Shown here piece after piece: positions 1 through 43,435 of a stretch of 64,000 nt of DNA. The stretch spans positions 1,178,001 to 1,242,000 of the forward strand of contig MU008168.1 of NCBI GenBank assembly GCA_010909165.1. The letters are read 5' to 3'. The stretch is from Anthoceros angustus (lineage: Eukaryota > Plantae > Anthocerotophyta). The notes beneath the pieces were generated by a model. It was not told the origin of the DNA. It did not search any database and saw only the letters and a list, made by a program, of their open reading frames with translations. Both the position numbers and the translations under genes were made by a program. Position 1 is the stretch's first letter, and each line of letters begins with the position of its first letter.

Positions 1-1088
1 GCCCGTCCCTGTCATGGACCCATGCTGCTTCTGGGACTTCCATCTTCATAGAAATGACTGTGCTTATGGAGTGCACCTGAGCTGAACGTAGAAACACAAT
101 TAGAACCTTTTGATCTGCGTCACATTCTACCAACCCAATCACAATGACGGGCAGCTGAAGAGCAACCTCCTCAAATCTAGCAATTTGAGGTGCAGTTACC
201 AGGACCTTCCAGTCGTGCTAACGACTGGTAACATACATAGTGCATCAGACTTTGACACATACAGAATCTCGTAGGGCACGACGGTTACCCCTTTATCAGT
301 TCGGCTGCTGCGTGCCCATCCAAGTCTGTGAAGATTCCCAAAGTTACTAGCAAGCATTCCATGAGCCGCCAATATGGCTTTCTCCAGCTCTGCTTCAACG
401 GCTGCAAGAATACAGACCGGAGAAAATGTGACAACCTGCATAATACTAGCAGCAGCTCAGCCATTGTAGCTTGGACAGAAGCTACTTACTGGGGACTCCT
501 GTAGACCGTTGCAACTGCAGTCCTGCAAAAACCCGAGTGACTTCAGGACAACCGCATACTTTCCTCTCAAGCATGATACCCAAATGTCGATCATTTGCTA
601 ATCTATTTGGGCTCATCCTTCTACCAACCTTTGTACTCGGTTCCAACATAGCCAACCCAGAAGCAAACCTTCTTCTTCACCCTCCCATCACCAGGAGCAG
701 TAGCAGGCGGTTCCAGCAGCCCGTCACTTCCCTCCACCACAGGGCAAAGCTCAACTGAAGTTCTTTCTGCCATCCTCCATGAAGTCCTCCTACAAGAGTG
801 ACCTGATCCACCCTTACTCTCCAACAGTCCCAGAAATTTTCCTCTGGTGAATGCTCGAGAGCTTACTTTTCCTGCATACATGACAGAAAGACAGATGATC
901 ACCACATTCCGCCTCTATGACTCAACAGGATGCACACCCACGACATAAGGTGGACAACATGATAGGATGTACGCCATCACTCACTCACTTGAGTCACATT
1001 GCCCGTGTCCCTTGGCCAGAGTATGGAAAGAGGGCGGCACCAGGGTGCAGAGCTTGCAGCTGCTCCACCACACTGCGCTGCTACGCAT
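1..1088 (-). CDS. tRNA pseudouridine synthase (TruA/PUS1 family, At2g30320-like), copy 1, 5' part only (continues beyond window start)
   Basis: Spliced exons give MRSSAVWW..(ATG 1088), [28 protein letters not shown] (490-522), [19 protein letters not shown] (289-401) and [15 protein letters not shown] (<=76). RTDKGVH is the TruA catalytic-Asp motif. GT-AG junctions read by eye. Confidence 0.88.
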
Positions 1089-1894
1089 GGCACCCGAATG
1101 CTTCAAAATTTGGCCTCACAGCTCACAGTGTGCCAAATACAGCCTTGTCTCAAGTCCTGTTTGGCAGGACGGCGGATTTCCTCTACATATATGTATTAGG
1201 TTTCATAAATTTCACACTGATAATATAAAATGGAATCAAGTCGATGCTTAGTGTTTTCTGCTCGCTGTTTTCGCTTGGTGTTCTCCATATTAGGAGTTGT
1301 TTGGAGAAGAACCTTAAGCATTTTGCGCTTCGATTGGCACTTGGATGGGGTGTTTAGAAGGGAGTGGATGCCCTTGGTGCTAGTAATTTAGGTACGCCAT
1401 GTTATAAATTGTTAAGTACTAAGTCCCATGTCAAAAAAATTTATCCAAGAGGACAATAATGGACTTCTTCTTCTTAATCACTTCAGGAGAAGTTAGAAGC
1501 ATAGGTAATAGAGAGAATTTAAATGTAAGGTTGAGATTAAGCTAATTATTATCTAGCACGTAAGATCGTCGTTTATTTAATACCATATAGGTAGTGGAGA
1601 GCTTTTGATTTGGAAAGCCTTACATCTATGACACCATATAACTAGAGAAAGTTATTGATTCAAAAAGCCCAGATGTAAGGAACAATTATGCAATAAAGAA
1701 AGTTGTTGGTACGATTTAAAAAGTCTAGACACAATGTCAAGTTGACTATTTCTCCATTCCACACCACACAATGATAGATGTTCTATCATGTAATATTATT
1801 AATATATTATTTTATATAAAGATAAAGTTGTGAATCCTCTTCTCTCAAGCATGGAGCTCCCCTAGCCTAATGGAAAGCATCTTACTTCTAATAA

Positions 1895-2618
1895 GGGGAT
1901 TGCGGGTTCGAATCTCAGCGTTAGGGGATTGCGAGTTTGAATCCCGCTGAGAGAAATCTAGTAACTTGTTGCATTGCATCATTTGAGTTCCTGCCAAGAA
2001 ACATGAAAATATGGGTTCCTATGATCTGAGGATCATCCCGCCGAGAGTACTCTGGCAACTTGTTTCATTGCATCGTCTAGCAACTTGTTCCATTGCATCG
2101 TTTGAGTTCGTGCAGGAAACATGAGTTCATGGAGGAAACTTCAGATAGTAAACATGGGCTCATCCCGCCAAGAGTACTCTGGCAACGTGTTCCATGGGCA
2201 AACTATGAGTTCATGGAGGAAACTTAAGATAGTAAACATGGGGCTCATCCCGCCAAGAGTACTCTGGCAACGTGTTCCATTGGCAAACATGAGTTCATGC
2301 AGGAAACTTCAGATAGTAAACATGGGGCTCATCCCGCCGAGAGTACTCTGGCAACGTGCATCGTTTGAGTTCGTGCAGGAAACATGAGTTCATGGAGGAA
2401 ACATGGGTTCCCGCCGAGAGCTCATGGAGGAAACTTCAGATACTAAACATGGGGCTCATCCCGCTGAGAGTACGGAGGAAACATGGGTTGCCGCCGAGAA
2501 CTCATGGAGGAAACTTCAGATAGTAAACATGGGGCTCACCCCGCCGAGAGTACTCTGGCAACGTGTTCCATTGCATCGTTTCAGTTCGTGTAGGAAACAT
2601 GAGTTCATGGAGGAAACT
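1895..2618. repeat. Degenerate ~100-bp tandem satellite, copy R1
   Basis: Repeated blocks ttgcatcgtttgagttcgtgcaggaaacatgagttcatggaggaaacttcagatagtaaacatggggctcatcccgccgagagtactctggcaac. Near-identical array at 23,685-24,404 and a diverged one at 41,440-42,295. Confidence 0.9.
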
Positions 2619-4331
2619 TGTGCCCGCGCAGAAGATCTGACATCAGGCAGACAGGTCCATTCCGATGTCCTGAGTAGTGTGCTTAACCCTGATGTATTTG
2701 TCGGGAGCTGCCTGGTGGAAATGTATGCAAGATGTGGGAGGTTGGATGATGCTCGTACAATCTTTGACAAGTTGGACTCGAGAAATGTGGTCACATGGAA
2801 TACGCTGCTTGGAGGGTATGCTGAGGGTGGGCGTGGGCAAGAAGCCCTTGCGCTCTATGCAAGTATGCAAGAGGAGGGAATCACTCTGCCTGACCATGTC
2901 ACGTTTTTGTGCCTCCTCAAAGCATGTGGGTGGTAGCAGTGGAACACTACACCAGGGAATGCGGCTTCATTCACAAATACAGGAAGCAGGTCTAGGGCAT
3001 TGGAGCAGGGAAGTCAGCTACATGACCAGTTTCAGGAGATGGGGCTGCAAGTTGACGTGGTCATTTCGAGCTGCCTGGTGGACATATATGCAAACTGTGG
3101 GAGCTTAGAGGATGCCCGCAGGGTGTTTGACGAGTCAGCCACAAGAGATGTCGTGACTTGGACTGCCATGCTCACTGCGTACGAGGAGCATGGTCTAGCC
3201 AAGAAGCGCTGTCTCTGTATGTGGTTGTGGGCAGCTGCCTAGTGGACATGTATGCGAAATGTGGGTGCTTGGATGATGCTCGGAGCGTGTTCTACACTCT
3301 GGATACCAGAGCCATCCTGACATGGAATGTGATGTTTGCAGGATATGTCTTGCACGGGCTGGGGCAGGAGGCCCTTGATCTCTATGCCGTCATGCATCAC
3401 CGTGGAATCACGGCCGCTGATCATGTTACATTCGCCCGTCTTCTAAAGGCATGTGCTCGCATGGGAGCATTGCACACGGGGCACCAGCTCCATGCTCAGG
3501 TTCGAGAGAGATGTTTGAAAGCGGATGTGGTTGTGGGCAGCTGCCTGGTGAACATGTATGCAAAATGCGGAGCTTGGACTGAGCCTGCAGAGTGTTTGAA
3601 AGCCTGCCCACAAAGAACGAGGTGACATGGAGTGCGGTAGTTCTTGCAGCGTATGGTCAGCACAGGATGGGTCAGGAAGCTCTCATGTGCTACGACAAAA
3701 TGGTGATGGCAGGCGTCCAGGCGAATGAAGTCCCGTTCCTTTCAATTCTCTCTGCCTGCAGTCATGCTGGCCTGGTGTGGGAAGGTCTGCAGTACTTCAA
3801 ATCCATGGACAGATATCACGGCATAGCTCCCAGAGCTGAGCACTATGCCTGTATGATACATCTCCTGGGACGTGCCGGACGCTTCACAGTGGTAGAAGAG
3901 CTCTTGTCAAGTATGCCGATGCAGCCTACTCTTTCCTTTCCATGTTAATGTCTCTGCTGGGCTTCCTGCAGGAAGCACAGTAATGTATCTCTCGCGGAGA
4001 ACAAGTCTTCGATCTGGCAGTGCGTCTGCAGCCCACAAATGCCGCAGCATACATGTTGATGTCATAGATGTACGCTGATGCGGGCCTTCCAGAGGACGCC
4101 CATAGGGTGGACAAGCGCAGGAAGACGGAAAGTGCTGCGTGGAAAGAGCCAGGCTGGAGCTGGATAGCGCATGACGAGGAAGTGCACACCTTTCTGGCGG
4201 GCCGCGTCCAGAACTCACAGCATAGTCAAGTGTATGACATGTTAGCCGAGGTAACCTGTAAGCAGGAGGCAGCACAGGCAGAACAGAGCGTGTGCTCGGT
4301 ATCCTCATCTCTGTCCGAGGGTCCCTCATGA
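2619..4331 (+). pseudogene. PLS-class PPR gene with E/E+ tail, 5'-truncated pseudogene (copy A)
   Basis: PPR motifs VFVGSCLVEMYARCGRLDDARTIFD, VVTWTAMLTAY, FLSILSACSHAGLVWEG and PRAEHYACMIHLLGRAG, plus E+ KEPGWSWIAHDEEVHTF. Frameshifts and an in-frame TAG (atgtcatagatg, ~4066) are shared with copy B. Confidence 0.88.
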
Positions 4332-4958
4332 TGCGTCCCTCTGCCCTCTACCACGTGCAGGTCTTGAGAAATGGATGGTGTGCATTGCTTCTGGGAAGCT
4401 ACGTGTATCCACGACTTGCTCCGAAGACAGAAGACAGCTCACCTTGGGAGCAGCATCAGGTGGCACAGGAATATACCTGTTCTGTTGTACATAGCAGTCT
4501 TGGTGAGATGAAAGAGCATTGCTTGACGTGGTGAAACACGAACCCAGCAAACAGTGTACGGATTGGGGCTGGACATCTCGCCTCCTCGAAACTATGGAAA
4601 CTGTCAGGAGTCGGTCTCATCCGATTCCTTTCATGAAAGGGCCATCTTCAAGGACGAAAGAGAGAGAGTGCAGCGCTCCTGTAGTCCAAAATGTAGTCCG
4701 AAACCACTGGTGTCAGGAATGCCTCGTCGTGCAAAGTCTACAGTGTAGACAGCTTTGTAACAAGTATGTAGCTAGAGAGGCGCCTTTGCAGGCGTGCAGA
4801 AGTCGGAGGCGTGCAGTGCACGCTTCTCCGCGCCGCTGGCCAGCACTGGCCCAGGAGGAGTGGATTCCACTCTCTCTGGAGTGGGACGCCCTTGGTTCTG
4901 CTTGCCTTCTTTTGCTAGTCCTCCTCACAGGGTGAGACGTTGTTGTGAAGGTTGGGCT

Positions 4959-7900
4959 ATGACGGATCCATCTCTTCCTCCCGGCGCCGCGCCGGTGGAC
5001 CTGCTCCACAGCCTCGAGTCCCGCTCGCCGCACCTGCGTGCTTTGCTTGCAGACCTGGAGTCCTACTCGCGACAGCCGTCGGAACTGCCGTCTGTTGATT
5101 CGTGGGGAAGCTACTTCAATTGCGACTGCGAGGACGGGGAATGTCACCACCGCGAGGAATGGCACTGGGAGGTGCGCTTGCGTCTACTCACAGCTATGGG
5201 CAGATGCCGGTCGCTCACGACAATTCGACTGAATCCTCGGCGGACGATGGGTCACAGCGTGAGGCAGAACGAGGCGGTGGCGCTCTTATCAGGCTTGCAA
5301 CACAACTTTGGGCTGACGGAGCTGGATCTGTATGGCTACAAGGGTTTTGGGACGGCAGCAGCCTGCCTGCAGTTGAGTGCCATCATCGACAGAACTTCTT
5401 CCTCACTGCAATCCCTCGGTCTGCAATATGTGGGATTGAGTGCAGACGGCCTGGGTGCCATCGCTGCAGCCCTTGGACGCAATGCCAGCTCATCAGAGCT
5501 GTTCAGCTTATCTCTGTGTGGGAACGACATTGGGAATGCTGTCGGGGCGCAACACTTGGCCGACATCCTTACCAACTCGCCCAAGCTCCGCATCTCGATG
5601 AGCAACATAGGGATGGACGAGGAAGGAGCCGTGGTGATTGCACAGGCCCTGGCGCATACCACCACACTGGCCGAGCTCACAATCGGAGATCCTGCGCCCC
5701 GGAATCCAAACCAGCGCGCGCCCATGTTCCTCGTTCCACTGCTCCAAGCTTTGGTGTGGCACACCGTGGCGGATCCTCCAGCTGCTGTTTCTTGCAATTA
5801 CTCCATCAGTAAGCTTGTCCTTGGGTGTCCGGGAGGCCAGGAGGCTGTGGAGCCGGGGCTGGGAGAAGCCCTGGCTCGGGTGCTTCGCACCAACCGGGCT
5901 CTGAAAGACCTCAAACTATCCAGCTTCTTCGTCAAACGCGGATTGGGAGCTCTGTGCGAAAACAGCAGCATCACCAATCTCCTGGTGGCCCACTCGCCGC
6001 AGTCGGACGATGATGACATGGATCCCATGCTGACCACCATCCTGGATGAGTGCGAGACTGTTGAGCAGGTGCAGATCCAGTTTGACAAGCCCTTTGGTCC
6101 GTCCAGCTTCACCAAGGCGTTTTTCCAAGGGTTCCTGCAGAAAAACCGCAGCATCAAGAGGCTGGTGTTGGATGGCTGGGATGGGCTGGACGAGGAGATG
6201 TTTGAAGACCTGATTCAGTCCTTGTCCACCAACACCAACACCTCTCTCGGGCTTGAGCACATCTCCATCGAGGGCACCTCATGGGAAAAGCAAGGCAGGG
6301 CCGAACGTCTGCAGGAAGCGTTGAGAGATGCATTGCGAGTGCAGCCGGAGCTGGCTGCGTTGCTTGCAGACCTGGAGTCCCACTCGGCAGGGCGGTCCAG
6401 GTCGGGGTGGTTAGGTGTTGATTCGTGGGACGCGACTTCCCATGGAACTGGGAGGACCCTGTTGATTCGTGGGAAAGCTACTTCAATTGCGACTGCGAGG
6501 ACGGGGAATGTCACCACCGCGAGGAATGGCACTGGGAGGTGCGCCTGCTCACAGCTATGGGCAGATGCCGGTCGCTGAGGAAGATTCGACTGAATCCTCG
6601 GCGGAAGATGGGTCACAGCGTGAGGCAGGACGAGGCGGTGGCGCTCTTATCAGGCTTGCAATACAACTTTGGGCTGACGGTGCTGGATCTGTATGGCTAC
6701 AAGGGTTTTGGGACGGCAGCAGCCTGCCTGCAGTTGAGTGCCATCATCGACAGAACTTCTTCCTCACTGCAATTCCTCGGTCTGCAATATGTGGGATTGA
6801 GTGCAGACGGCCTGGGTGCCATCGCTGCAGCCCTTGGCTCATCAGAGCTGTTCAGCTTATCTCTGTGTGGGAACGACATTGGGAATGCTGTCGGGGCGCA
6901 ACACTTGGCCGACATCCTTACCAACTCGCCCAAGCTCCGCATACTCTCGATGAGCAACATAGGGATGGACGAGGAAGGAGCCGTGGTGATTGCACAGGCC
7001 CTGGCGCATACCACCACACTGGCTGGGCTTAGAATCGGAGATCCTGCGCCCCGGAATCCAAACCAGCGCGCGCCCATATTCGTCGTTCCACTTCTCCAAG
7101 CTTTGGTGTGGCAAACCCAGGCGGATCCTCCAGCTGCTGTTTCTGGCAATCACTCCATCACACGGCTTGACCTTGGGTGTCCGGGAGGCCAGGAGGCTGT
7201 GGAGCCGGGTCTGGGAGAAGCCCTGGCTCAGGTGCTTCGCACCAACCGGGCTCTGAAAGACCTCAAACTATCCAGCTTCTTCGTCACACGCGGATTGGGA
7301 GCTCTGCGGGAAAACAGCAGCATCACCGAACTCCTGGTGTTCACTCGCGGCAGTCGGAGGATGATGACATGGATCCCATCCTGACCACCATCCTGGATGA
7401 GTGCAAGACTGTTGAGGAGGTGCAGATCCGGTTTGACAAGCCCTTTGGTCCGTCCAGCTTCACCAAGGCGTTTTTCAAGGGTTGCTGCAGAAAACCGCAG
7501 CATCAAGAGGCTGGGGTTGGATGGCTGGGATGGGCTGGACGAGGAGATGTTTGAAGACCTGATTCAATCCCTGTCCACCAACACCAACAGGTATCTCAGG
7601 CTGGAACACATCTCCATCGAGCGCACCTCGTGGGAAAAGCAAGGCAGGGCCGAACGTCTGCAGATAGCGTTGAGAGATGCACTGCGAGTGCAGCCGGAGC
7701 TGGCTGCCTTGCTTGCAAACTTGGAGTCCGAGTCCAGGTCAGTGTTGATTCGTGGGACGCGACTTCCCATGGAACTGGGAGGACCCTGTTGATTCGTGGG
7801 AAAGCTACTTCAATTGCGACTGCGAGGACGGGGAATGTCACCACCGCGAGGAATGGCACTGGGAGGTGCGCTTGCGTCTGCTCACAGCTATGGGCAGATG

Positions 7901-10900
7901 CCGGTCGCTGAGGAAGATTCATCTGAATCCTCCGGCGGAGGAGGGTCACAGCGTGAGGCAGGACGAGGCGCTGGCGCTATCAGGCTTGCAACACAACTTG
8001 TGCTGGAGGAGCTGAATCTGTATGGCTACAAGGGTTTGGGACGGCAGCAGCCTGCCTGCAGTTGAGTGCCATCATCGACAGAACTTCTTCCTCACTGGAC
8101 TTCCTCGGTCTGCAACATCTGGGATTGAGTGCAGAAGGACTGGGTGCCATCGCTGCAGCCCTTGGACGCAATCAGAGCTGTCCAGATTGTCTCTGTGGGA
8201 ACGACATTGGGAATGCTGTCGGGGCGCAACACTTGGCCGACATCCTTACCAACTCGCCCAAGCTCCGCAATCTCTGGATGAGCAACATAGGCATGGACGA
8301 GGAAGGAGCCGTGGTGATTGCACAGGCCCTGGCGCATACCACCACACTGGCTGGGCTTAGAATCGGAGATCCTGCGCCCCGGAATCCAAACCAGCGCGCC
8401 CATGTTCCTCGTTCCATTGCTCCAAGCTTTGGTGTGGCAAACCCTGGCGGATCCTCCAGCTGCTGTTTCTGGCAATCACTCCATCACACGGCTTGTCCTT
8501 GGGTGTCCGGGAGGCCAGGAGGCTGTGGAGGGCTGGGAGAAGCCCTGGCTCAGGTGCTTCGCACCAACCGGGCTCTGAAAGACCTCAAACTATCCAGCTT
8601 CTTCGTCACACGCGGATTGGGAGCTCTGCGGGAAAACAGCAGCATCACCAAACTCCTGGTGTTTCACTCGCGGCAGTCGGAGGATGATGACATGGATCCC
8701 ATCCTGACCACCATCCTGGATGAGTGCAAGACTGTTGAGGAGGTGCAGATCCGGTTTGACAAGCCCTTTGGTCCGTCCAGCTTCACCAAGGCGTTTTTCA
8801 AGGGTTGCTGCAGAAAACCGCAGCATCAACAGGCTGGTGTTGGATGGCTGGGATGGGCTGGACGACGAGATGTTTGAAGACCTGATTCAATCCCTGTCCA
8901 CCAACACCAACAGGTATCTCAGGCTGGATCACATCTCCATCAAGGGCACCTCATGGGAAAAGCAAGGCAGGGGCGAACGTCTGCAGAAAGCGTTGGGAGC
9001 TGCGAGTGCAGCCCAGCTGCGTGCGTTGCTCGCAGACTTGGAGTCCGAGTCGCCAGTGCTGCAAGAACTCCCACGGAACTGGGAGGATCTGTTGATTGTG
9101 GGAAGCTATTTCAATTGCGACTGCGAGGACGGGGAATGTCACCACCGCGAGGAATGGCACTGGGAGGTGCGCTTGCGTCTGCTCACAGCTATCGGCAGAT
9201 GCCGGTCGCTGAGGAAGATTCATCTGAATCCTCGGAAGAGGGTCACAGCGTGAGGAGGACGAGGCGGTGGCGCTCTTATCAGGCTTGCAACACAACCTTG
9301 TGCTGGAGGAGCTGAATCTGTATGGCTACAAGGGGTTTGGGACGGCAGCAGCCTGCCTGCAGTTGAGTGCCATCATCGACAGAACTCATCGCTCACTGGA
9401 CCTCGGTCTGCAATATGTGGATTGAGTGCAGAAGGCCTGGGTGCCATCGCTGCAGCCCTTGGCTCAGCTCAGTGCTGTCCAGATTGTCTCTGTGTGGGAA
9501 CGACATTGGGAATGCTGTCGGGGCGCAACACTTGGCCGACATCCTTACCAACTCGCCCAAGCTCCGCAATCTCTGGATGAGCAACATAGGGATGGAAGGA
9601 GCCGTGGTGATTGCACAGGCCCTGGCGCATACCACCACACTGGCTGGGCTTAGAATCGGAGATCCTGCGCCCCGGAATCCAAACCAGCGCGCCCATGTTC
9701 CTCGTTCCATTGCTCCAAGCTTTGGTGTGGCAAACCCTGGCGGATCCTCCAGCTGCTGTTTCTGGCAATCACTCCATCACACGGCTTGTCCTTGGGTGTC
9801 CGGGAGGCCAGGAGGCTGTGGAGCTGGGCTGGGAGAAGCCCTGGCTCAGGTGCTTCGCACCAACCGGGCTCTGAAAGACCTCAAACTATCCAGCTTCTTC
9901 GTCACACGCGGATTGGGAGCTCTGCGGGAAAACAGCAGCATCACCAAACTCCTGGTGTTCACTCGCAGTCGGAGGATGATGACATGGATCCCATCCTGAC
10001 CACCATCCTGGATGAGTGCAAGACTGTTGAGGAGGTGCAGATCCGGTTTGACAAGCCCTTTGGTCCGTCCAGCTTCACCAAGGCGTTTTTCCAAGGGTTG
10101 CTGCAGAAAACCGCAGCATCAACAGGCTGGTGTTGGATGGCTGGGATGGGCTGGACGACGAGATGTTTGAAGACCTGATTCAATCCCTGTCCACCAACAC
10201 CAACACCCATCTCAGGCTGGATCACATCTCCATCAAGGGCACCTCATGGGAAAAGCAAGGCAGGGGCGAACGTCTGGAGAAAGCGTTGAGAGCTGCGCGA
10301 GTGCAGCCGCAGCTGCGTGCGTTGCAGACCTGGAGTCCCACTCGCCAGTGCTGCAAGAACTCCCATCTGTGGATTTGTGGGAAGCTACTTCAATTGCGAC
10401 TGCGAGGACGGGGAATGTCACCACCGCGAGGAATGGCACTGGGAGGTGCGCTTGCGTCTGCTCACAGCTATCGGCAGATGCCGGTCGCTCAGGAAGATTC
10501 ATCTGAATCCTGGGAGGAGGGTCACAGCGTGAGGAGGACGAGGCGCTGGCGCTGCTATCAGGCTTGCAACACAACCTTGTGCTGGAGGAGGATCTGTATG
10601 GCTACAAGGGGTTTGGGACGGCAGCCTGCCAGGCACTGATTGCCGTCATCGACAGAACTCATCGCTCACTGGAATCCTCGGTCTGCAATATGGGATTGAG
10701 TGCAGAAGGACTGCCATCGCTGCAGCCCTTGGACGCAATGCAGCTCATCAGTGCTGTCCAGATTGTCTCTGTGTGGGAACGACATCGGGAATGCTGTCGG
10801 GGCGCAACACTTGGCCGACATCCTTACCAACTCGCCCAAGCTCCGCAATCTGGATGAGCAACATAGGCATGGACGAGGAAGGAGCCGTGGTGATTGCACA

Positions 10901-13900
10901 GGCCCTGGCGCATACCACCACACTGGCTGGGCTTAGAATCGGAGATCCTGCGCCCCGGAATCCAAACCAGCCGCGCCCATGTTCCTCGTTCCATTGCTCC
11001 AAGCTTTGGTGTGGCACACCCTGGCGGATCCTCCAGCTGCTGTTTCTGGCAATCACTCCATCACACGGCTTGTCCTTGAGTGTCCGGGAGGCCAGGAGGC
11101 TGTGGAGGGCTGGGAGAAGCCCTGGCTCAGGTGCTTCGCACCAACCGGGCTCTGAAAGACCTCAGACTATCCAGCTTCTTCGTCACACGCGGATTGGGAG
11201 CTCTGCGGAAAACAGCAGCATCACCAAACTCCTGGTGTTTCACTCGCGGCAGTCGGAGGATGATGACATGGATCCCATCCTGACCACCATCCTGGATGAG
11301 TGCAAGACTGTTGAGGAGGTGCAGATCCGGTTTGACAAGCCCTTTGGTCCGTCCAGCTTCACCAAGGCGTTTTTCAAGGGTTGCTGCAGAAAACCGCAGC
11401 ATCAACAGGCTGGTGTTGGATGGCTGGGATGGCTGGACGACGAGATGTTTGAAGACCTGATTCAATCCCTGTCCACCAACACCAACACCCACCTCAGGCT
11501 GGATCACATCTCCATCAAGGGCACCTCATGGGAAAAGCAAGGCAGGGGCGAACGTCTGGAGAAAGCGTTGGGAGCTGCGCGAGTGCAGCCGCAGCTGCGT
11601 GCGTTGCTCGCAGACTTGGAGTCCGAGTCGCCAGTGCTGCAAGAACTCCCATCTGTGGATTTGTGGGAAGCTATTTCGATTGCCTTTGCCAGGAGGCCTA
11701 CAGGGAGTGTCCACCGGGGCAGTGGCAGTGGTACGTACGCCTGCGCCTGCTCACAGCTATCGGCAAATGCCGGTCGCTGAGGAAGATTCATCTGAATCCT
11801 CCGGGGAGGAGGGCACTTACAGCGTGAGGGAGGTAGAGGCGCTGGCTCTGCTATCAGGCTTGCAACACAACCTTGTGCTGGAGGAGCTGAATCTGTATAC
11901 AAGGGGTTTGGGACGGCAGCCTGCCTGCAGTTGAGTGCCATCGACAGAACTGCTATCTCACTGGACTTGCGGTCTGCAATATCTGGGATTGAGTGCAGAA
12001 GGACTGGGTGCCATCGCTGCAGCCCTTGGACGCAATGCCAGCTCATCAGTGCTGTCCAGATTGTCTCTGTGGGAACGACATCGGAATGCTGTCGCAACAC
12101 TTGGCCGACATCCTTACCAACTCGCCCAAGCTCCGCAATCTATGGATGAGCAACATAGGCATGGACGAGGAAGGAGCCGTGGTGATTGCACAGGCCCTGG
12201 CGCATACCACTACACTGGCTGGGCTTAGAATCGGAGATCCTGCGCCCGGAATCCAAACCAGCCCGCGCCCATGTTCCTCGTTCCATTGCTCCAAGCTTTG
12301 GTGTGGCACACCCTGGCGGATCCTCCAGCTGCTGTTTCTGGCAATCACTCCATCACACGGCTTGTCCTTGAGTGTCCGGGAGGCCAGGAGGCTGTGGAGC
12401 CGGGGCTGGGAGAAGCCCTGGCTCAGGTGCTTCGCACCAACCGGGCTCTGAAAGACCTCACACTATCCAGCTTCTTCGTCACACGCGGATTGGGAGCTCT
12501 GCGGAAAACAGCAGCATCACCAAACTCCTGGTGTTCCACTCGCGCAGTCGGAGGATGATGACATGGATCCCAACCTGACCGCCATCCTGGATGAGTGCAA
12601 GACTGTTGAGGAGGTGCAGATCCGGTTTGACAAGCCCTTTGGTCCGTCCAGCTTCACCAAGGCGTTTTTCAAGGGTTGCTGCAGAAAACCGCAGCATCAA
12701 CAGGCTGGTGTTGGATGGCTGGGATGGGCTGGACGACGAGATGTTTGAAGACCTGATTCAATCCACCAACACCAACACCTCAGGCTGGATCACATCTCCA
12801 TCAAGGGCACCTCATGGGAAAAGCAAGGCAGGGGCGAACGTCTGGAGACTTGGGAGCTGCGCGGTGCAGCCGCAGCTGCGTGCGTTGCTCGCAGACTTGG
12901 AGTCCGAGTCGCCAGTGCTGCAAGAACTCCCATCTGTGGATTTGTGGGAAGCTATTTCGATTGCCTTTGCCAGGAGGCCTACAGGAGTGTCAACACCGGG
13001 GCAGTGGCAGTGGTACGTACGCCTGCGCCTGCTCACAGCTATCGGCAAATGCCGGTCGCTGAGGAAGATTCATCTGAATCCTCCGGGAGGGGCACTTACA
13101 GCGTGAGGGAGGTAGAGGCGCTGCTATCAGGCTTGCAACACAACCTTGTGCTGGAGGAGCTGGGGCTGTTGGCTACGTGGGCTTTGGGACGGCACCCTGC
13201 CTGCAGGCATTGACTGGCGTCATGGAGAGATGCTATTTCTCATTGGACTTGCTGGGTCTGCAATATCTGGGATTGAGTGCAGAAGGACTGGGTGTCATCG
13301 CTGCAGCCCTTGGACGCAACCGCAGCTCAGTGCTGTCCAGATTGTCTCTTTGTGGGAACGACATCGGAATGCTGTCGGGGCGCAACATTTGGCCGACATC
13401 CTGAGGAATTCGATCGCCCTCCGCAATCTCTGGATGAGCAATATTGGCATGGATGAGGAAGGAGCCGTGCTGATTGCAGAGGCCCTGGCGAATACCACCA
13501 CCCTGCCGAGCTTCAGAATCGGAGATCCTGTGTTCATTGGTTCGATTCTCGAAGCTTTGGTGTGGCACACGCCTGGTGGATCCTCCAGCTGCTGTTTCTG
13601 GCAATCACTCCATCACACGGCTTGTTCTTGAGTGCCCAGGAGGCCAGCAGGCCGTGGAGCCGGACTGGGAGAAGCCCTGGCTGGGGCTTAGAATCGGAGA
13701 TCCTGCGCCCGGAATCCAAACCAGCCCGCGCCCATGTTCCTCGTTCCATTGCTCCAAGCTTTGGTGTGGCACACCCTGGCGGATCCTCCAGCTGCTGTTT
13801 CTGGCAATCACTCCATCACACGGCTTGTCCTTGAGTGTCCGGGAGGCCAGGAGGCTGTGGAGCCGGGGCTGGGAGAAGCCCTGGCTCAGGTGCTTCACCG

Positions 13901-16900
13901 GGCTCTGAAAGACCTCACACTATCCAGCTTCTTCGTCACACGCGGATTGGGAGCTCTGCGGAAAACAGCAGCATCACCAAACTCCTGGTGTTCCACTCGC
14001 GGCAGTCGGAGGATGATGACATGGATCCCAACCTGACCGCCATCCTGGATGAGTGCAAGACTGTTGAGGAGGTGCAGATCCGGTTTGACAAGCCCTTTGG
14101 TCCGTCCAGCTTCACCAAGGCGTTTTTCAAGGGTTGCTGCAGAAAACCGCAGCATCAACAGGCTGGTGTTGGATGGCTGGGATGGGCTGGACGACGAGAT
14201 GTTTGAAGACCTGATTCAATCCCTGTCTACCAACACCAACACCACCTCAGGCTGGATCACATCTCCATCAAGGGCACCTCATGGGGGAAAAGCAACGTCT
14301 GGAGAAAGCGTTGGGAGCTGCGCGTGCAGCTGGGAGTTGGGTGCGGTGCAGCCGCAGCTGCGTTGCTCGCAGACTTGGAGTCCGAGTCGCCAGTGCTGCA
14401 AGAACTCCATCTGTGGATTTGTGGGAAGCTATTTCGATTGCCTTTGCCAGGAGGCCTACAGGAGTGTCAACACCGGGGCAGTGGCAGTGGTACGCCTGCG
14501 CCTGCTCACAGCTATCGGCAAATGCCGGTCGCTGAGGAAGATTCATCTGAATCCTCCGGGAGGATGGGCACTTACAGCGTGAGGAGGTAGAGGCGCTGGC
14601 GCTGCTATCAGGCTTGCAACACAACCTTGTGCTGGAGGAGCTGGGGCTGTTGGCTACGTGGGCTTTGGGACGGCACCCTGCCTGCAGGCATTGACTGGCG
14701 TCATGGAGAGATGCTATTTCTCATTGGACTTGCTGGGTCTGCAATATCTGGGATTGAGTGCAGAAGGACTGGGTGTCATCGCTGCAGCCCTTGGACGCAA
14801 CCGCAGCTCAGTGCTGTCCAGATTGTCTCTTTGTGGGAACGACATCAGGAATGCTGTCGGGGCGCAACATTTGGCCGACATCCTGAGGAATTCGATCGCC
14901 CTCCGCAATCTCTGGATGAGCAATATTGGCATGGATGAGGAAGGAGCCGTGCTGATTGCAGAGGCCCTGGCGAATACCACCACCTGAGCTTAAAATCGGA
15001 GATCCTGTGTTCATTGGTCCAATTCTCGAAGCTTTGGTGTGGCACACCCTGGCGGATCCTCCAGCTGCTGTTTCTGGCAATCACTCCATCACACGGCTTG
15101 TTCTTGAGTGCCCAGGAGGCCAGCAGGCCGTGGAGCCGGACTGGGAGAAGCCCTGGCTCAGGTGCTGCGCACCAACCGTGCTCTCACTGACCTCAGACTT
15201 GCCAGCTTCTTCGTCACACGCGGATTGGAAGCGCTACCTGAAAACAGCAGCATCACCCAACTCCAAGTAAGTCACACGCGGAATTCGGAGGATGATGACA
15301 TGGATCCTATGCTGATCACGATTCTTCAGGAGTGCAAGAATGTCCAGCAGCTGCAGCTTCAGTTTTATAAGCCCTTTGGTCCATCCAACTTCTCCAAGGC
15401 GTTTTTCCAAGGGTTGCGGGATAATCGTAGCATCAAGACGCTTGTGTTGGATGACTGCGAAGGATTGGATGACTACATGTTCCAGAACTTGATGCGGTCT
15501 CTGGGACGCAACTGCAACAACGTCCTGGAGAACATTTCCATCAAGAAAACAACCTGGGAAAGCGAAGGCAAAGGAATACAGATCCAGAATCTGCTCTCAA
15601 GGAACGTGCACAGAAGAAGCGCTGCTCCGCAGGGTAGGTGCCCCAAGCCAGTAGCTTGCTACCCTTGTCCTGATTTGTATCTACTGTCAGAACCCACTAA
15701 CTCAGATGTATACTGACCCCTTCTCACTTGTGCAGGTTCGGAAGGAGTGCCACCACCGGTCACGGCAACTGTGGCAACCTCTGGTGCCGCAGCAGGTAAT
15801 GAAACTTCGTGAATACAATGTGGATTTGATCCAACCACTTCCAAGCTGTTGTTGTTGTTGCAACTAGTTTGAATGCATGTACCGAATGCACCACTTGATG
15901 CTGCTGCTGGCAGACAGTCTGATGATTGACTGATTGGCTGTCTTTGTTTTCACCACAATTTCCAGTTGCTGTTCCTGAGGAGCTCAGTACCCTGCTTGCC
16001 GACCTCGACTCACCTTCGCCTACACTCAGTCGTCTTCCTCGTGTGGAAGCGTTTGGGCACTTGTTCGAGAGGGACGTGGAACATCCAAAGGTGGAACTTG
16101 AACTGCGCATGCGCCTTATGAAGGCTATCGGGAAATGCCCCACACTCAGATTCATAGATCTCGACCCTCTTGGGCGTCGAAATTACAGGGTGACGGTGGC
16201 AGAGGCGATGGCGCTGCTGGAAGGCCTGAGCTCGAATGCAATAGTGGAACGGCTGGACTTGAGTGGCTTCCTTGGTTTTGGAACAGGTGAAGTCTGCGCT
16301 GCAATCGCCGCTATCTTGCAATCCAGCCGCACCTTGCAATTTCTGAATATGGGATACACTGGCATGACTGTCGAAGGACTGGCTTGCATGCGACATAATC
16401 GCAGCACTGTGCTTCGCACCTTGTATCTTTCTGGAAACACGACTGTGGAGAAGGTGTTGGAGCTCAACACCTGGCTGATATCCTGACCAGCACTCCCGCT
16501 CTTCGCAACCTGGGGATGTGGGATACAGGGATGGATGAGGCGGGAGCATTGATGATAGGGGATGCTCTGGCTCAGAACACCACACTTGACTGGCTGAACA
16601 TAGGATTCAATCAAGCGTGGAGGCCAAAGCAGGCAGGGATGATGGCCACGCTGTTAGCTCGAGCATTCACCTACCAAATGTTGCTTTCGCTTCTGTTAAC
16701 GAGTCTGTCACACATCTCCAGCTGGAAGTATGGGGAGCAGGACAGCAGCCTGTCATCGCTGAGTTGGGAGAAGCTGTGGCCCGCATGCTGCGGTCGAACA
16801 TGACTTTAAGGCATCTCGATGTATGTAGCTGCTTTATAAGCCAGGGGTGTGAGGAGTGACAACAGCAGCGTTATCCGTGTGACAGTCCGACATGGTAGCT

Positions 16901-19900
16901 CTAGTGCTAAGGAGGACTAAGAGGATGATGCCAATCCTGCCAGACAGTGGAAAGTTTACAATTAGCTCAGAACAGTTTGGGACCTTTGGGATCATCCGAC
17001 CTCCCAAGACGTTTTCAAATCGTTGCAGGACAATCGTTACCTCAACAGGTTGGTGTTGGATGGCTGGAAAGGGTTGGACGACAATATGTTCCAAGACCTG
17101 TTGCGGGCTCTGCAAGTGAACACCAATTTGAAGAGTATATCGTTCGAGAACACTGTGTGGAAAAGTCAGGAAAAGGAGCTGCAGTGGATGAACTACTACG
17201 CCAAAACAGGGAATACCGGAAAGCTCTGGCAGGGGCTCCAACAATGCCAGTGAAATCATGTCGCCTCGTACTTTGTGGATTTCCATATGCAGGTGAGCCA
17301 CATGCTGAACCCAAAGTTTGTACATCCCAAATGGCGTAGTTTGCAGACTTCACTGCAGTTGTTTCTGTCTTCTCTACAGCTGTTTTCTTGTCTTAACGTT
17401 GTTTTCGTCTCCGAGTGTAATCGGTGGTAAATGTTGCTGTTTCAGGAAAACCACGATACGGAATACGTTGATGAGTATGCAAACACACGAAAACGATGTT
17501 GAGATGGAGGGTGAAACGATTTCGAAGCACATACCTCGAACCCTTGGGTTTGAGGTTGAGGTGATAAAAGATGGTCCAGCCTTGAGAATTACCGTTTGGG
17601 ATCTTGCAGGGCACCAGGAGTTTCATGCTCTTCACGATTTCGTCTTTCCTGCTGTGAATAACTCTTCTCTCTTGTTTGTCTATAACCCGTTCAAATTTGG
17701 TGGTAATTATTCAAGTGCGGAAATGAAGGATAGAAAGGATTTTCGAGATGAATTTATTTATTGGCTTAAATTTATTGCTTCCAACTCATGGTTAGCTCAA
17801 CAGGTGAAACCTTATGTTCATGTGGTGGTAACATTTAATGACAAGCTTGAAGGTAGGATGTCTTGAAATACGGAGGAAGTGTTGGTGATGAAGAAAAAGT
17901 TTATGGCTATTGTGGAAATATCCGATGATCCCACTTTCATCAATGGACAAAGTTGGAAAGATGTGTGTGAAGTACGCAGGCTTGTACAGGAAAAGCTACA
18001 ACAACGTATTAGCACATTGGCTCCAATTCCCAGCATTTGTGAGCAGCTCCGTGTACATGTACGGAAATGGGCTGAGAATGAACATGGTATGCCAATCATT
18101 TCTGTTGAAAAGTTTATCGAGTTGTTTTACTCCACGTGTAAGGTGGCAATAGGGCATCCACTCATCTCATCTTATAGAAGATTTCTTAGAGACTTCATGG
18201 ACAAAGAGGATAGCTGGAAAGTAGTAGCATCATATCTCAAGGATCTGTGGAGATCATATATTTCCAAATGTCACTTATGGTCATCAACCTCCGATGGTTA
18301 GGAATGGGCGTTTTGGTCAGCTGATTAGTATATTTGGTGAACGGACAATAGGCAAGATTGGCTTCAAGTTCAAAATGGGTTCATCAGCAAATATGGGTTG
18401 AGTAGCCTTCTAAAATGTCTTTGAACAAGGTAGGGCTTGATGAAACCATTGTGAGCGAGGAAAAATTCATCCAACTGATGTGTGAGTTGCACCTTTGCTA
18501 TGAAAGTGGAGATGTGGATGGAGAAACTCAATATTTTGTTCCAATAAGTATGTATAAAGAAGAAGATTTATTAGGAGTTGATCAACAGTTAGTATGGCCT
18601 TCACAGAGTCTGGATCATGATTATATCTTTATGGGTTTGCGTTTACAATGTGATGATCAAGATTGTACATTCCTCACACCAGGATTTTTTCCTAGGTTAC
18701 AGGTTGTAACTTTTCTCAAGTTGAACTATCTTTTGTTTTATGTCCTGAAACTTCTTCTTTTGTTTTATTATTATTAACTGTTAACTAGTCTCATTGTTCC
18801 TATATATTGTAGGTACTTTTATACACATATTGTTTGAAAAAAGTGGGTTGATGAGGAAAGACCAATTGATTCAGAATAAAATTGGAGCCTAATGTCCTTT
18901 TAATATCTGCAGAGGCAATGGATATCTTTGTGGAATTTAATGCCAAAGTGGGTTGTTACATAGATATATTGGCCCGATCTACTCAAGGCTATTTAGAGTC
19001 CATGTCATTTTGAGGAACATATTGTATCTCGATTCGGGCATTTTGTGTATGAGGGTTGTGCAGGGTCACTAGTTGAAGGTGTTCTTCGACATGAATGTGT
19101 GGCATCCCTCACTCTATGCGAATAGGAGACGAGTGTATCACACGAGCTAGTTGAAAAAAGCGGTATGCAAAGGATCGATGCTGCACACTACACGCAATCT
19201 TGGAAGTGTATTTGCGACAGCAACACCCCAGGCGACGCAATTATTTTAAAGGCCAACCGAGAGTATGCAACGGTGGTGGATGGTCATGTCATTTTGGGAC
19301 AAAGAGGACCACAAAGCCAAGCGAGTTCCAAGGTTTGAAGCTCTCAATTCTGGATAGTTTGTGTTGCACTAGGTGTCCTTCTTCTCACATGTAGTTTCTA
19401 AGTAGCTTTGCACAAGTAGGCCGTTTCTTGCATACTCTAATTATACCGGCAGATTGAAATCCAGAAGTTGCTTTGGTGGAACTCCTACACTATCCCGCAA
19501 GTAGGGAAGAAGAAGCCTATTGTTGGGAGTAGTTATCCTAACCATGGTGTGGAAGAAGGTAATCGAAGAGGTTTGGCAATGATTGTGAGTGGAAGAGGAT
19601 AGACTGGAGGATCTGAGACAGAGGGCGACTTGATTTTCTTTTCAACACATTGGCATGCTTTTATTAGTGGACAGGCGAGAGTGTCAAAGCACATATTAGG
19701 AAAGTTGCCGATCTCTACTAGCTAAGGACGATTGCTTTGTGTTGCATCAATGCTCATGGGGGATTGAAGAAAATGGCAGAGACTACATTGAAATTGGAAA
19801 ACCACCTCGGGAGAAGCTATATGTTTACGATGACATCGTGAAGCCCATTTGCGAATCCAAGTGGTTGAAAGACAAGCCTAAGGTGTTTCTGATCAATGCT

Positions 19901-20274
19901 TGTCGAGCCATCCAAAGTGGGAAAGCTAAGGACTCTGAAGTCGAGGGTAGCCAAATTGTGAGTGAGAGAGCCGGAGAAGATCTACGCCTGCCTTCTGAGA
20001 AGGATTGTCTCATCTTCTTCTCGACCAGTCATGGACAACAATCGTTTAGAGATGTCAACAATGGCTCAAACTTTATCATAGCTTTGATGGAAGCCATCAT
20101 TGAGGGGTCGGAAAAAAAGGATGATATGTTCAGCATTTTAACATCAGTGATTGCCAAGGTCACGGAGATGCCACGTTGGCTCCGAAATCAAGAAGGGTCT
20201 TATGAGAGGAGACCCAGTGTCCGGTGTTTTCCTCCACACTCACGAGAAAGCTTTGGTGGTGGCCTCGGCCTTAG
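4959..20274 (+). CDS. Giant LRR(8+1 domains)-ROC-COR-caspase-like protein, TORNADO1-related (copy A); frameshifted in this sequence
   Basis: ATG 4959 (MTDPSLPPG). RNI-like LRRs (LSLCGNDIGNAVGAQHLADILTN). Introns ~15,634-15,735 and 15,796-15,965. Walker A GFPYAG|KTT split by an intron at ~17,293-17,446, RTLGFEV, WDLAGHQEFHALHD, VVVTFND. COR-region GLRLQCDDQDCTFLTPGFFPRLQV resembles TRN1. C-terminal KPKVFLINACRA protease domain. Confidence 0.85.
5000..15633 (+). repeat. Coding tandem array of eight ~1.3-1.35-kb LRR-domain units
   Basis: Marker MDP(M/I/N)LT.ILDEC recurs at ~6020, 7370, 8695, 9985, 11270, 12565, 14025 and 15300. Unit-start motif L(R/A)ALLADLES recurs with the same period. Confidence 0.93.
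19560..20274 (+). other. Caspase-like (clan CD, C14) catalytic domain of copy A gene
   Basis: A/B consensus: RRGLAMIVS..DCFVCCINAHGG (His codon 19,755-57)..KPKVFLINACRA (Cys codon 19,901-03)..DCLIFFSTSHGQQSFRDVNNGSNFIIALMEAI..QCPVFSSTLTRKLWWWPRP*. Confidence 0.85.
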
Positions 20275-20459
20275 GTGCAAGGAAGCAGCCCGGCAAAAGT
20301 TGGATTGAGCATGAGCAGAAGGTTCACACATTTCGAGTTGCAGACCAAGAGCATCAGGAAGCACCATTGCTATATGCATTGCTGGAAGACCTAACCACTA
20401 AGCTAAAGGAGGCTGGGTATGTAGACTTCGAGGAAAGCTGGCATGGAGAGCTGAATTGA
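20275..20459 (+). pseudogene. Orphan PPR E2/E+ tail fragment directly after the caspase stop (copy A)
   Basis: ARKQPGKSWIEHEQKVHTFRVADQEHQEAPLLYALLEDLTTKLKEAGYV matches the PPR PG-box/E+ consensus K.PG.SWIE...VH.F...D..H....IY..L..L...MK..GY. Confidence 0.75.
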
Positions 20460-20539: not shown

Positions 20540-22944
20540 CTACAGTTGCTGTTTCCTAAGGTCCTTCTGCAATGCATTCTGCTCACTCCAGTGACGGAAA
20601 GCTTCCCTTACAGGATTGAGCTCTGCATCCTCTATCTGAGCCTGAGAGGTGACATTGTCTATCCAGAAAGACCACACCGGAGTAGTGTGGTCCAACAGGG
20701 GGCCACACTCAGGAGCACCACATTGTGCAAAAATGTTTGCATAATGCTCTTCACCTCGCTGGATGGTTCTAACCTTGAATGTTTAGCATCATTCATGGTT
20801 GCCATCAAGTTCTGGGCATATGAGCTGGGCTGCCGAAAATTGTGGAAGTCGTTGTCTACAAGGACCAAGCCTTCTGACGGTGCAAGTGGCAGGATTATGC
20901 GGGAGTGTCGAGCCAGTGACAGAGGTATCACGTCAGGGGAAGCACTCCCATAACACAGCCACAGCTGTTCCCACCATCTTTCTGATCTGAAAGCAAATCA
21001 GCCAACAGACAACTCTTGACACTCCAGCAAGCAGTACAACCACCAAATGCACACCAGTGCCAGAACAGACAGAACCCGACATCATACAAAATCGTGTGTA
21101 CCTGATGAAGCATAAAGGACTCGCCAGTGATGGACAATCTCAGGAGACGGACATTTCCGCAAATCTCAATCTGAGAACTACAGGAGCAGGAGATGATGTG
21201 CCGAAAATGTGCAGTCCTGATTTTGTCTTTGCTGTCAGGCTCAAACAACCACCTTGCCCTTGCTGTAGATTCATCATCTTCTGCCCCATCTGGAACCTGG
21301 CTTTCTTCATCCAAAGATGATTGGTCATCTTCCGGAATGCTCACACCACTGTCACAATCATCCAGCACCTCCGGGACAACCGCCGATTCATCTTCGGAAG
21401 ACCGACTACCCCTGCGGTTAAAGTAGGCAGGCTTGTTCACGTCTTTGTACTTGCTCCGAGCGGTGTAATTATGGAAAGGATGCCTTCCTGCCAATTGACA
21501 ACAGCCAATGTCACGGGTACTGCTACACGTCCTCCTAACCAAGCTTTCGGTGCCTCAATTGGCTGACAACCTGAAATGCTGATAATATGTTGTTCAGCTC
21601 TGTCACTCGATCTTCACTTGCTGCCATTGAACCAGAGTGATTGATGTCAAGCACAGCCGGTGGTAGTAGATACTCGTATGTGCGGGTAAAACACATCTTT
21701 CTTGAATCGAAGGACCTGCAGAACCAGGATGGTCAGTGCCGAAAACGGCAGTTATGACTGAAACATTCCACACATTGAGCTTAAGTCGAGTCAGACCTGG
21801 GCACTGGGACAACAGAAAACACTTTTATGCTTGCAGGTAAGTGAGCATTGATACTTTCCGCCAATGCAAGCCCGTCCCTGTCATGGACCCATTCTGCTTC
21901 TGGGACTTCCATCTTCATAGAAATGACTGTGCTTATGGAGTGCACCTGAGCTGAACGTAGAAACACAATTAGAACCTTTTGATCTGCGTCACATTCTACC
22001 AACCCAATCACAATGACGGGCAGCTGAAGAGCAACCTCCTCAAATCTAGCAATTTGAGGTGCAGTTACACTAGGACCTTCCAGTCGTGCTAACGACTGGT
22101 AACATATAGTGCATCAGACTTTGACACATACAGAATCTCGTAGGGCACGACGGTTACCCCTTTATCAGTTCGGCTGCTGCGTGCCCATCCAAGTCTGTGA
22201 AGATTCCCAAAGTTACTAGCAAGCATTCCATGAGCCGCCAATATGGCTTTCTCCAGCTCTGCTTCAACGGCTGCAAGAATACAGACCGGAGAAAGCATAA
22301 TACTAGCAGCAGCTCAGCCATTGTAGCTTGGACAGAAGCTACTTACTGGGGACTCCTGTAGACCCTTGCAACTGCAGTCCTGCAAAAACCCGAGTGACTT
22401 CAGGACAACCGCATACTTTCCTCTCAAGCATGATAACCAAATGTCGATCATTTGCTAATCTATTTGGGCTGATCCTTCTACCAACCTTTGTACTCGGTTC
22501 CAACATAGCCAACCCAGAAGCAAACCTTCTTCTTCACCCTCCCATCACCAGGAGCAGTAGCAGACGGTTCCAGCAGCCCGTCACTTCCCTCACCACAGGG
22601 CAAAGCTCAACTGAAGTTCTTTCTGCCATCCTCCATGAAGTCCTCCTACAAGAGTGACCTGATCCACCCTTAGTCTCCAACAGTCCCAGAAATTTTCCTC
22701 TGGTGAATGCTCGAGAGCTTACTTTTCCTGCATACATGACAGCAAGACAGATGATCACCACATTCCGCTTCTATGACCCAACAGGATGCACACCCACGAC
22801 ATAAGAAGGACAACATGATAGGATGTACGCCATCACTCACTCACTTGAGTCACATTGCCCGTGTCCCTTGGCCAGAGTCTGGAAAGAGGGCGGCACCAGG
22901 GTGCAGAGCTTGCAGCTGCTCCACCACACTGCGCTGCTACGCAT
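20540..22944 (-). CDS. tRNA pseudouridine synthase (TruA/PUS1 family), copy 2, full length
   Basis: Same 5' exons as copy 1 (ATG 22,944) plus [41 protein letters not shown] and C-terminus ..DLRKQQL* (stop 20,540-42). A few 1-bp indels. Confidence 0.88.
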
Positions 22945-23684
22945 GGCACCCGAATGCTTCAAAATTTTGCCTCACAGCACACAGTGTGCCAAATACAGTC
23001 TTGTCTCAAGTCCTGTTAGGCAGGACGGCGGATTTCCTCTACATACATGTATTCGGTATCATAAATCTCACACTGATAATATAAAATGGAATCAAATCGA
23101 TGCTTAGTGTTTTCTGCTCGCTGTTTTCGCTTGGTGTTCTCCATATTAGGAGTTGTTTGGAGAAGAACCTTAAGCATTTTGCGCTTCGATCGGTGTAATT
23201 TAGGTATGCCATGATATAAGTTGTTAAGTACTAAGTTCTATGTCAAGAAATTTATCCAAGAGGACTACAATGGACTTTTTCTTCTAATTCACTTCAGAAG
23301 AAGTTAGAAGCATAGGTAATAGAGAGAATTTAAATGTAAGGTTGAGATTGAGCTAATTATTATCTAGCATGTAAAATCGGCGTTTATTTAATACCATATA
23401 GGTAGTGGAGAGCTATTGATTTGGAAAGCCTTACATCTATGACACCATATAACTAGAGAAAGTTATTGATTCAAAACCCGGATGTAAGGAACAATTATGC
23501 AATAAAGAAAGTTGTTGGTACGATTTAAAAATCTGGATACAATGTCAAGTTGACTATTTCTCGATTGCACACCACACAAATAAAACTATTAATATATTAT
23601 TTTATAAAATGATAAAGTTGTGAATCCTCTTCTCTCAAGCATGGAGCTCCCTAGCCTAATGGAAAGCATCTTACTTCTAATAAA

Positions 23685-38213: not shown

Positions 38214-38292
38214 ACACAAGGCAGATGTCGTAGTAGTAACCTTCATTTATCAGCAATTAAGCTTAGTACATTCAAAGAGTGATTTCTTCTGG

Positions 38293-43375: not shown

Positions 43376-43435
43376 TTTTCGCTCCTGTTTTTGCTACCTC
43401 TCGTTCATCGATCACTTCCGACGCAGCGGTTGGTC

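Follow-up and report, generated by a model that had tools for sequence, protein, structure and literature searches.

Tandem arrays of complete leucine-rich-repeat domains in the first coding exon of two hornwort LRR-Roc-caspase genes, one of them probably intact

Leucine-rich-repeat (LRR) receptors vary by the addition of single repeats, by the exon shuffling of single repeats and by the duplication of whole genes. The 64,000-nucleotide stretch of the Anthoceros angustus genome analyzed here (contig MU008168.1, positions 1,178,001 to 1,242,000; hereafter "the window") raises the question of whether a receptor of this kind can also vary by entire LRR domains, and whether the genes that suggest so are functional. 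Two neighboring genes in the window, copies A and B, have a first coding exon that consists of complete LRR domains arranged head to tail, eight in copy A versus five in copy B. Our preferred reading, which we hold to be probable (roughly 0.6), is that the first coding exon of two LRR-Roc-(COR)-caspase genes truly carries a tandem array of whole LRR domains and that the real copy A is intact. We regard the locus as an LRR-Roco receptor whose sensor varies by the copy number of whole solenoids within one exon.

Extent and fold of the repeated unit

Self-BLAST reveals a tandem segmental duplication in the window, in which segment A spans 1 to ~21870 and segment B ~21870-39621, with a third copy, of the first 2.2 kb only, at 39621-41789. 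Within segments A and B, the array stretch is GC-rich (57-58% GC) and has a period of ~1.3 kb, to which Tandem Repeats Finder is blind because its longest period is 500. We therefore used self-BLAST instead, followed by tblastn with unit A1 and by boundary mapping. The units measure ~1.3 kb, near 3 x 439 nt, and their pairwise DNA identity is 77-98%. The initial annotation had proposed eight versus five units of a TRN1-type LRR domain, a count that is borne out by all three steps, and had ended the copy A array at 15633, which proved to be the exact last base of the exon. The arrays are laid out as follows.

4959-15633, + strand: copy A array exon, with ATG at 4959, eight units and the donor GT at 15634
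5027-6343 (open frame 5028-6344), + strand: unit A1, the sole unbroken frame as assembled, 439 amino acids
6344-7696, + strand: unit A2, 5 frameshifts as assembled, without a stop, nearest to B2 (~96%)
7697-9010, + strand: unit A3, 8 frameshifts, without a stop, nearest to B2 (~96%)
9011-10305, + strand: unit A4, 8 frameshifts, without a stop, nearest to B2 (~96%)
10306-11587, + strand: unit A5, counterpart of B3 (97.6%)
11588-12868, + strand: unit A6, counterpart of B4 (97.6%)
12869-14346, + strand: unit A7, hybrid of an A8 head and an A6 tail, without a counterpart in copy B
14347-15633 (homology border mapped to 15639), + strand: unit A8, bearing the splice donor, counterpart of B5 (96.0%)
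26747-33345, + strand: copy B array exon, with ATG at 26747, five units and the donor GT at 33346
26815-28111, 28112-29428, 29429-30722, 30723-32049 and 32050-33351, + strand: units B1 to B5, from boundary mapping
33448-33507, + strand: copy B mini-exon, followed by the copy B older LRR exon, which begins at 33674

The copy A start at 4959 is preceded by an upstream in-frame stop, and its equivalent in copy B is 26747. The best counterpart of A1 is B1 (95.9% DNA identity), and the order of the units is conserved between the copies (A1/B1, A5/B3, A6/B4 and A8/B5).

Each array is followed by an older LRR domain that lies next to Roc, and the units had been described as homologous to this domain from end to end. 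The comparison agrees with that description, since A1 and the older LRR domain are collinear, with 42% amino acid identity over 308 amino acids (E 5e-61), and both of the motifs quoted in its support were located, RLVLDGWDGLD..MFEDLIQSL at 6171 and RLVLDGWKGLD..MFQDLLRAL at 17059. A scan of 1.84 billion representative proteins returned a single end-to-end match to A1, the protein P0003 (36% identity; A1 residues 5-433 against P0003 residues 15-449; E 5.9e-40), and no close relative of A1. P0003 is an LRR open reading frame (ORF) on the public contig L001, where positions 709-5098 hold a single-LRR TORNADO1-like gene. In this gene, the 507-amino-acid LRR ORF immediately precedes a Roc/COR-A ORF, which is followed by a 495-amino-acid ORF without a Pfam match. 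On the strength of an earlier label, we assume the family of P0003 to be that of Arabidopsis TRN1 (TORNADO1). In the alignment with P0003, the unit covers the entire pre-Roc region, from an N-terminal LLxDLxSPSP motif to a GTSWE..ALRRN end situated just before the Roc P-loop. The higher-scoring matches of A1 are fish NACHT-LRR proteins with many LRR_6 repeats, whose similarity is that of individual repeats. Neither the first 490 amino acids nor a 171-amino-acid conserved core gave a match in word-based protein searches, a negative that is limited by query length and word noise.

A1 has no Pfam LRR match above the cut-off, and the older LRR ORF has a weak LRR_6 match of 19.4 bits. The AlphaFold2 model of A1 has a mean predicted local distance difference test score (pLDDT) of 80.4 and a predicted template modeling score (pTM) of 0.81, and contains 12 strand/helix repeats with helical ends. 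Its top Foldseek matches are ribonuclease inhibitor and the LRR domains of NLRP proteins (E 1e-11 to 1e-13), and the model shows the features of ribonuclease-inhibitor-type LRRs, namely strand/helix repeats of ~28-29 amino acids with an LxxLxLxxN core that together form a horseshoe. The amplified unit is thus predicted to be a complete, capped 12-repeat solenoid of the ribonuclease-inhibitor type, ~440 amino acids long. That the unit of variation is a whole LRR solenoid, as first proposed, therefore agrees both with the span of the P0003 alignment and with the modeled 12-repeat horseshoe.

Before the first LRR, each unit also carries a Cys/His-rich patch (5115-5150; A1 residues ~30-42), which reads NCDCEDGECHH in A1 and DCLCQEAYRECQH in the read-corrected A8. 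In the model of A1, this patch has low confidence (pLDDT below 50 at residues 35-38). It could be a small metal-binding cap.

Splicing of the array to the older LRR domain and Roc

For the end of the array and the downstream part of copy A (14347-20300), we compared the window with two sequencing runs from one sample, X1 and X2. Both runs are available as contigs, and depth was summed over all overlying contigs, including those of paralogues and sister units, so that it gives no copy number. X1 contains four joints that are absent from the DNA-like X2, three of them with GT..AG borders. Since these joints occur in X1 but not in X2, we treated X1 as RNA, a point on which the run record is silent. 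The downstream part of copy A is organized as follows.

15634-15735, + strand: intron 1, 102 nt, GT..AG, joint in X1 only
15736-15795, + strand: mini-exon, 60 nt, a Pro/Thr/Ala-rich linker that preserves the phase
15796-15965, + strand: intron 2, 170 nt, GT..AG
15966-17292, + strand: older LRR exon next to Roc, its 3' end set by the X1 joint 17292>17445, the exact borders of which are uncertain
17309-17863, + strand: Roc GTPase segment, Pfam PF08477 at 24.2 bits, below the cut-off of 27
19700-20305, + strand: caspase (Peptidase_C14) segment, Pfam PF00656 at 73.6 bits

In X1, one junction contig runs from the array exon into the older LRR exon; at positions 15579 and 15581, which are diagnostic for A versus B, it has the letters of copy A. 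The older LRR exon opens with AVPEELSTLLADLDSPS, the N-terminal motif common to every unit. Translation of the 60-nt mini-exon together with three flanking bases confirmed that it is free of stops and, by phase arithmetic, that the frame of the A8 tail runs on into the frame of the older LRR. A second X1 contig of 980 nt, spanning 16726-17836, leads from the older LRR across the joint 17292>17445 into Roc. These contigs show A8, the last unit, to be transcribed and, by way of the 60-nt mini-exon, joined in frame to the older LRR domain and Roc by splicing; the proposal that the array is transcribed into the Roc exon therefore holds for this unit, over which the contigs lie. An origin of the A8 contigs from copy B was considered and rejected; they have the letters of copy A at four of five diagnostic sites, and at 14474 they show a G that is present in neither assembled copy.

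The array had also been placed within one exon. A8 is covered by X1 contigs without any internal joint, and no intron fits within a unit, given that A1 is one open frame and that the unit lengths lie near 3 x 439 nt. These observations support the location of the units within one exon; what does not stand is a single open frame in the assembled letters, in which A1 alone is intact.

Further downstream, the Roc counterpart of copy B (35169-36068) reaches 27.6 bits with PF08477 (cut-off 27), in ORFs that are fragmented as assembled. For a COR domain after Roc, no Pfam match at E <= 0.1 was obtained in the ORF fragments, a negative that is weak because these fragments are short and frameshifted. 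X1 contigs cover 19743-20268 of the caspase part, and no single contig bridges the array and the caspase. Just before the caspase domain, at 19123-19719, there is nearly no DNA contig and there are few RNA-like contigs, although such dips in contigs prove nothing. An 18-nt skip in the older LRR exon (16671>16690) is common to the RNA-like and the DNA-like run and is thus a difference at the DNA level and not splicing. At 17616 and 17788-17789, the contigs of X1 and X2 both differ from the window and no contig backs the window letters, which are probably consensus errors in copy A or a strain difference.

Constraint on the units and the origin of the frameshifts

If the units encode a protein, the pattern of their divergence should be informative about whether it folds. 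On a frameshift-corrected codon alignment of the units, the ratio of nonsynonymous to synonymous polymorphism (pN/pS) is 0.09 at the buried L positions of LxxLxLxx, 1.09 at the exposed x positions and 0.70 in the rest of the LRR core. Variable sites make up 42 of the 60 x positions versus 106 of 300 elsewhere (Fisher P 1e-6). The most variable parts are the inter-unit linker (the last 19 plus the first 20 residues) and patches in LRR1-3, and residues 160-320 are near-constant. Overall, the ratio of nonsynonymous to synonymous substitution rates (dN/dS) is 0.5-0.9 and strongly heterogeneous; these unit ratios are descriptive and carry no formal test because the units recombine, and dN is somewhat inflated by alignment noise beside frameshifts. 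As read from the codon alignment, the units have diverged under protein-level constraint, with conserved buried leucines, free or diversifying exposed positions and no nonsense codons. This is the pattern expected of an LRR protein that folds, is in use and has a variable binding face.

However, A1 apart, every unit is broken as assembled. Frameshift-aware alignment to A1 requires a total of 124 frameshifts in the other 12 units, with 5-15 per unit, and the longest open frame in the array is ~600 codons. Several lines of evidence bear on how these frameshifts arose. First, ~5,100 aligned codons contain 0 in-frame stops, whereas at least 21 would be expected under neutrality (at least 631 independent substitutions, ~3.3% of which would create a stop in the absence of constraint; probability of none, ~8e-10). 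Second, indels occur between segments without substitutions: the tails of A5 and B3 differ by 7 gap events and 0 mismatches over 590 nt, A3 and A4 by 4 gap events and 0 substitutions over 439 nt, and A6 and A7 by 2 gap events and 0 substitutions, likewise over 439 nt. Third, the indels private to single units are 45 deletions versus 9 insertions, with lengths that are multiples of 3 in 8 of the 45 deletions, and indel sites common to units that are not mutually closest fall at short runs (T5C2, A5, T3 and G3-4). Fourth, the fractions of window 31-mers present in the two runs, 0.43 and 0.41, fit about one difference per 35 nt.

The contigs point the same way. All 12 of the 12 indels listed between read contigs and the window (14347-20300) are letters absent from the window. 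Two DNA contigs, 11 and 13, which span 12 and 15 A/B-diagnostic sites, respectively, have 0 substitutions relative to copy A there and yet one gap letter each. In the head of A8, nine insertions in X1 contigs over 14358-14650 turn three broken frames into one that is homologous to A1, and one of the nine restores a 6-nt in-frame insertion that is intact in B5. Outside the duplicated genes, an intact ORF of 593 amino acids for an SUV3-type RNA helicase (Pfam) lies at 46092-47873, which indicates that frameshift noise of the kind present in the duplicated gene copies does not affect the unique DNA of the window.

Taken together, the absence of stops, the indels without substitutions, the deletion bias, the low share of 31-mers, the additional letters in the contigs and the restored frame of A8 suggest that most of the frameshifts are assembly errors. 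It is fairly probable that most of the 124 are letters wrongly dropped from a long-read consensus, in duplicated DNA beyond the reach of polishing, and that the array is intact in reality. Homopolymer context accounts for only part of the indels (of 14 private 1-nt deletions, 9 fall in runs of at least 2; background, 0.44), and a pure homopolymer-error model was therefore dropped; we prefer a general, deletion-biased consensus error. More broadly, the duplicated regions of this assembly hold many small deletion errors, so that "broken gene" calls in this family require checking at the level of reads.

Several observations nevertheless weigh against an intact array, and some of them would suit one that is real but dead, both copies having decayed by genuine small deletions while the frame-intact RNA and DNA contigs stem from an intact paralogue. 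As assembled, 12 of the 13 units are frameshifted, in both copies. Most or all of the X2 depth at 14460, 14474 and 14489 lacks the inserted letters, and the deleted forms may thus exist as DNA in copy A or in paralogues, between which summed contig depth cannot discriminate. The recent A/B pairs have dN/dS values of 0.6-0.9, which are compatible with relaxed constraint. Moreover, the X1 contig over the A8 head has two private substitutions and could derive from a very close paralogue, the read evidence is confined to A8 and the downstream part, and the search of representative proteins found no protein with several whole units. Against decay stand the 124 frameshifts with 0 stops, which are unlike natural decay, and the indels between segments that have zero substitutions. 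The DNA contigs fit copy A at every diagnostic substitution and yet hold the extra letter, every listed indel is a letter that the window lacks, and the junction RNA contig has copy A letters. On balance, we regard a dead array as unlikely, though it is the alternative that survives best.

Unequal exchange between units and relation to known receptors

How, then, could two neighboring genes come to hold eight and five units? An answer lies in A7. Over its first ~810 nt, A7 resembles the head of A8 (95-98%), and its tail is free of substitutions relative to A6 (100% identity over alignment columns 949-1400), with a junction near 13677-13682 at which head and tail overlap by an extra 174 nt, that is, 58 amino acids or two LRRs. 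Self-BLAST likewise matches 12215-13682 to 13677-15158 at 95.2%. This mosaic points to a misaligned exchange between A8 and A6, which was also two repeats out of register within the unit. Beyond A7, the unit heads are mosaics of variants common to other units and the tails are homogenized. Judged from these footprints, the array has been built and resized by unequal crossing-over between units, and unequal crossover, which had been suggested as the mechanism of copy-number change, is thus corroborated by a unit with an A8-type head and an A6-identical tail. Because B2 is the nearest unit to each of A2, A3 and A4, and A7 lacks a partner, at least two separate events must lie between the two arrays.

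Substitution differences between A and B amount to 0.07-1% in the flanks versus 3-5% in the gene body. The gene body has therefore changed faster than its surroundings, by exchange between units and perhaps by selection, although part of the excess may be consensus error. A8 is 77-87% identical to the other array units; A8/B5, the sole bearer of the splice donor, appears from this divergence to be the oldest unit of the array. Since unit and older LRR are only ~42% identical, the first duplication would be old and the amplification recent. The first step may have been a partial duplication on the upstream side, whose product came to be joined by splicing, via the mini-exon, to what had been the first coding exon.

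An alternative is that the units are real and their counts wrong, the assembler having expanded or collapsed the array, so that the difference of eight versus five, or the hybrid A7, would be partly an artefact. The base-level quality in the array is indeed poor, and the tails of A7 and A6, like those of A3 and A4, are the same in substitutions, an identity that a mis-join could yield. Yet the unit heads differ by dozens of substitutions, the order of the units is identical in A and B, DNA contigs of both the A type and the B type exist in the run, and the junction in A7 has the form of a clean exchange, out of register by exactly two LRRs. We consider miscounting even less probable than decay. 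Finally, a non-coding satellite or transposon-derived 1.3-kb array that merely lies upstream of the gene has nothing but its tandem periodicity to recommend it and is refuted by the end-to-end homology of every unit to a protein domain, selection that varies by site class, the lack of stops, the confident fold prediction for A1 and the in-frame splicing to the downstream exon.

With a genuine array that is intact in copy A, the corrected gene would encode ~5,000 amino acids, with nine LRR horseshoes in a row. In front of the Roc switch and the caspase-type protease, these could act as a multimodule sensor arm, and we suppose that, as whole modules are gained, lost and recombined, the arm would change in what it binds or in the number of its binding sites (valency or specificity). 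That the plant makes such an intact protein of ~5,000 amino acids, in which nine separate horseshoes (~110 LRRs) precede the switch and the protease and crossing-over reshuffles a panel of recognition modules, is a possibility we advance tentatively and regard as rather doubtful at present. To our knowledge, diversification of a receptor by gain, loss and recombination of whole horseshoes is undescribed for nucleotide-binding LRR receptors (NLRs) or Roco proteins. In the present genes, what changes is a complete, capped solenoid (as modeled), of which one exon holds up to eight, and an immune-receptor-like pattern of a conserved core with variable exposed positions is accompanied by a clear footprint of unequal exchange. 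Were the corrected gene intact, copies B and A would offer a natural series in which the same switch and protease are preceded by six or nine horseshoes, respectively, which bears on the role of module number. The array also adds a peculiarity on the sensor side to the little-known family of plant Roco-caspase proteins.

Comparison with known systems places these genes close to the TORNADO1-type Roco proteins. The unit spans the whole pre-Roc region, is 36% identical to P0003, and a segment with a borderline Pfam match to Roc follows the older LRR. In contrast, the TORNADO1-like relative has one LRR domain, where the present genes have 8+1 and 5+1 and apparently end in a caspase-type domain; the relative on L001 has COR-A, and Pfam detected no COR here in the ORF fragments tested. 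Ribonuclease inhibitor and the LRR domains of NLRP/NLRC proteins resemble the unit most closely in structure (Foldseek) and, through the fish NACHT-LRR proteins, in sequence. However, they form one continuous, extended solenoid, while the array is predicted to form separate capped solenoids joined by variable linkers.

In the brown-algal LRR-ROCO genes, as PMC11378527 describes them (citing Zambounis et al. 2012), the unit is an LRR of 23-24 amino acids in its own phase-2 exon of 72 bp, which varies by exon shuffling and alternative splicing. The initial annotation had invoked this exon shuffling, correctly, as background (PMC11378527). According to the same paper, the algal genes encode LRR-Roc-COR proteins with fast change in the number and order of LRRs and with diversifying LRRs, and they are proposed as candidate immune receptors (PMC11378527). 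The present genes are likewise proposed as candidate immune receptors and resemble the algal ones in the fast and diversifying change of their LRRs. They differ in that the unit here is a complete 12-LRR solenoid of ~440 amino acids, amplified without introns inside one exon. A further parallel is offered by the Prunus Ma/RMja resistance genes for Toll/interleukin-1 receptor-type NLRs (TNLs), in which a post-LRR domain is repeated five times, with one exon per copy (PMC6141779). As in the present genes, a whole domain of a plant receptor stands in tandem and most of the polymorphism is found in the repeated domains (PMC6141779). However, Ma repeats the C-terminal post-LRR domain of a nucleotide-binding-site LRR protein, whereas here it is the N-terminal LRR horseshoe, in one exon of a Roco-caspase protein. 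Our literature search turned up no publication on bryophyte Roco-caspase genes or on hornwort TORNADO1.

Elsewhere in the window, each gene copy is preceded by tandem repeats of 80-85 nt (2117-2553 and 23905-24339), which occur also in the third, partial copy (41876-42203 and 43028-43376), and an additional 63-nt tandem repeat is located at 62691-62816.

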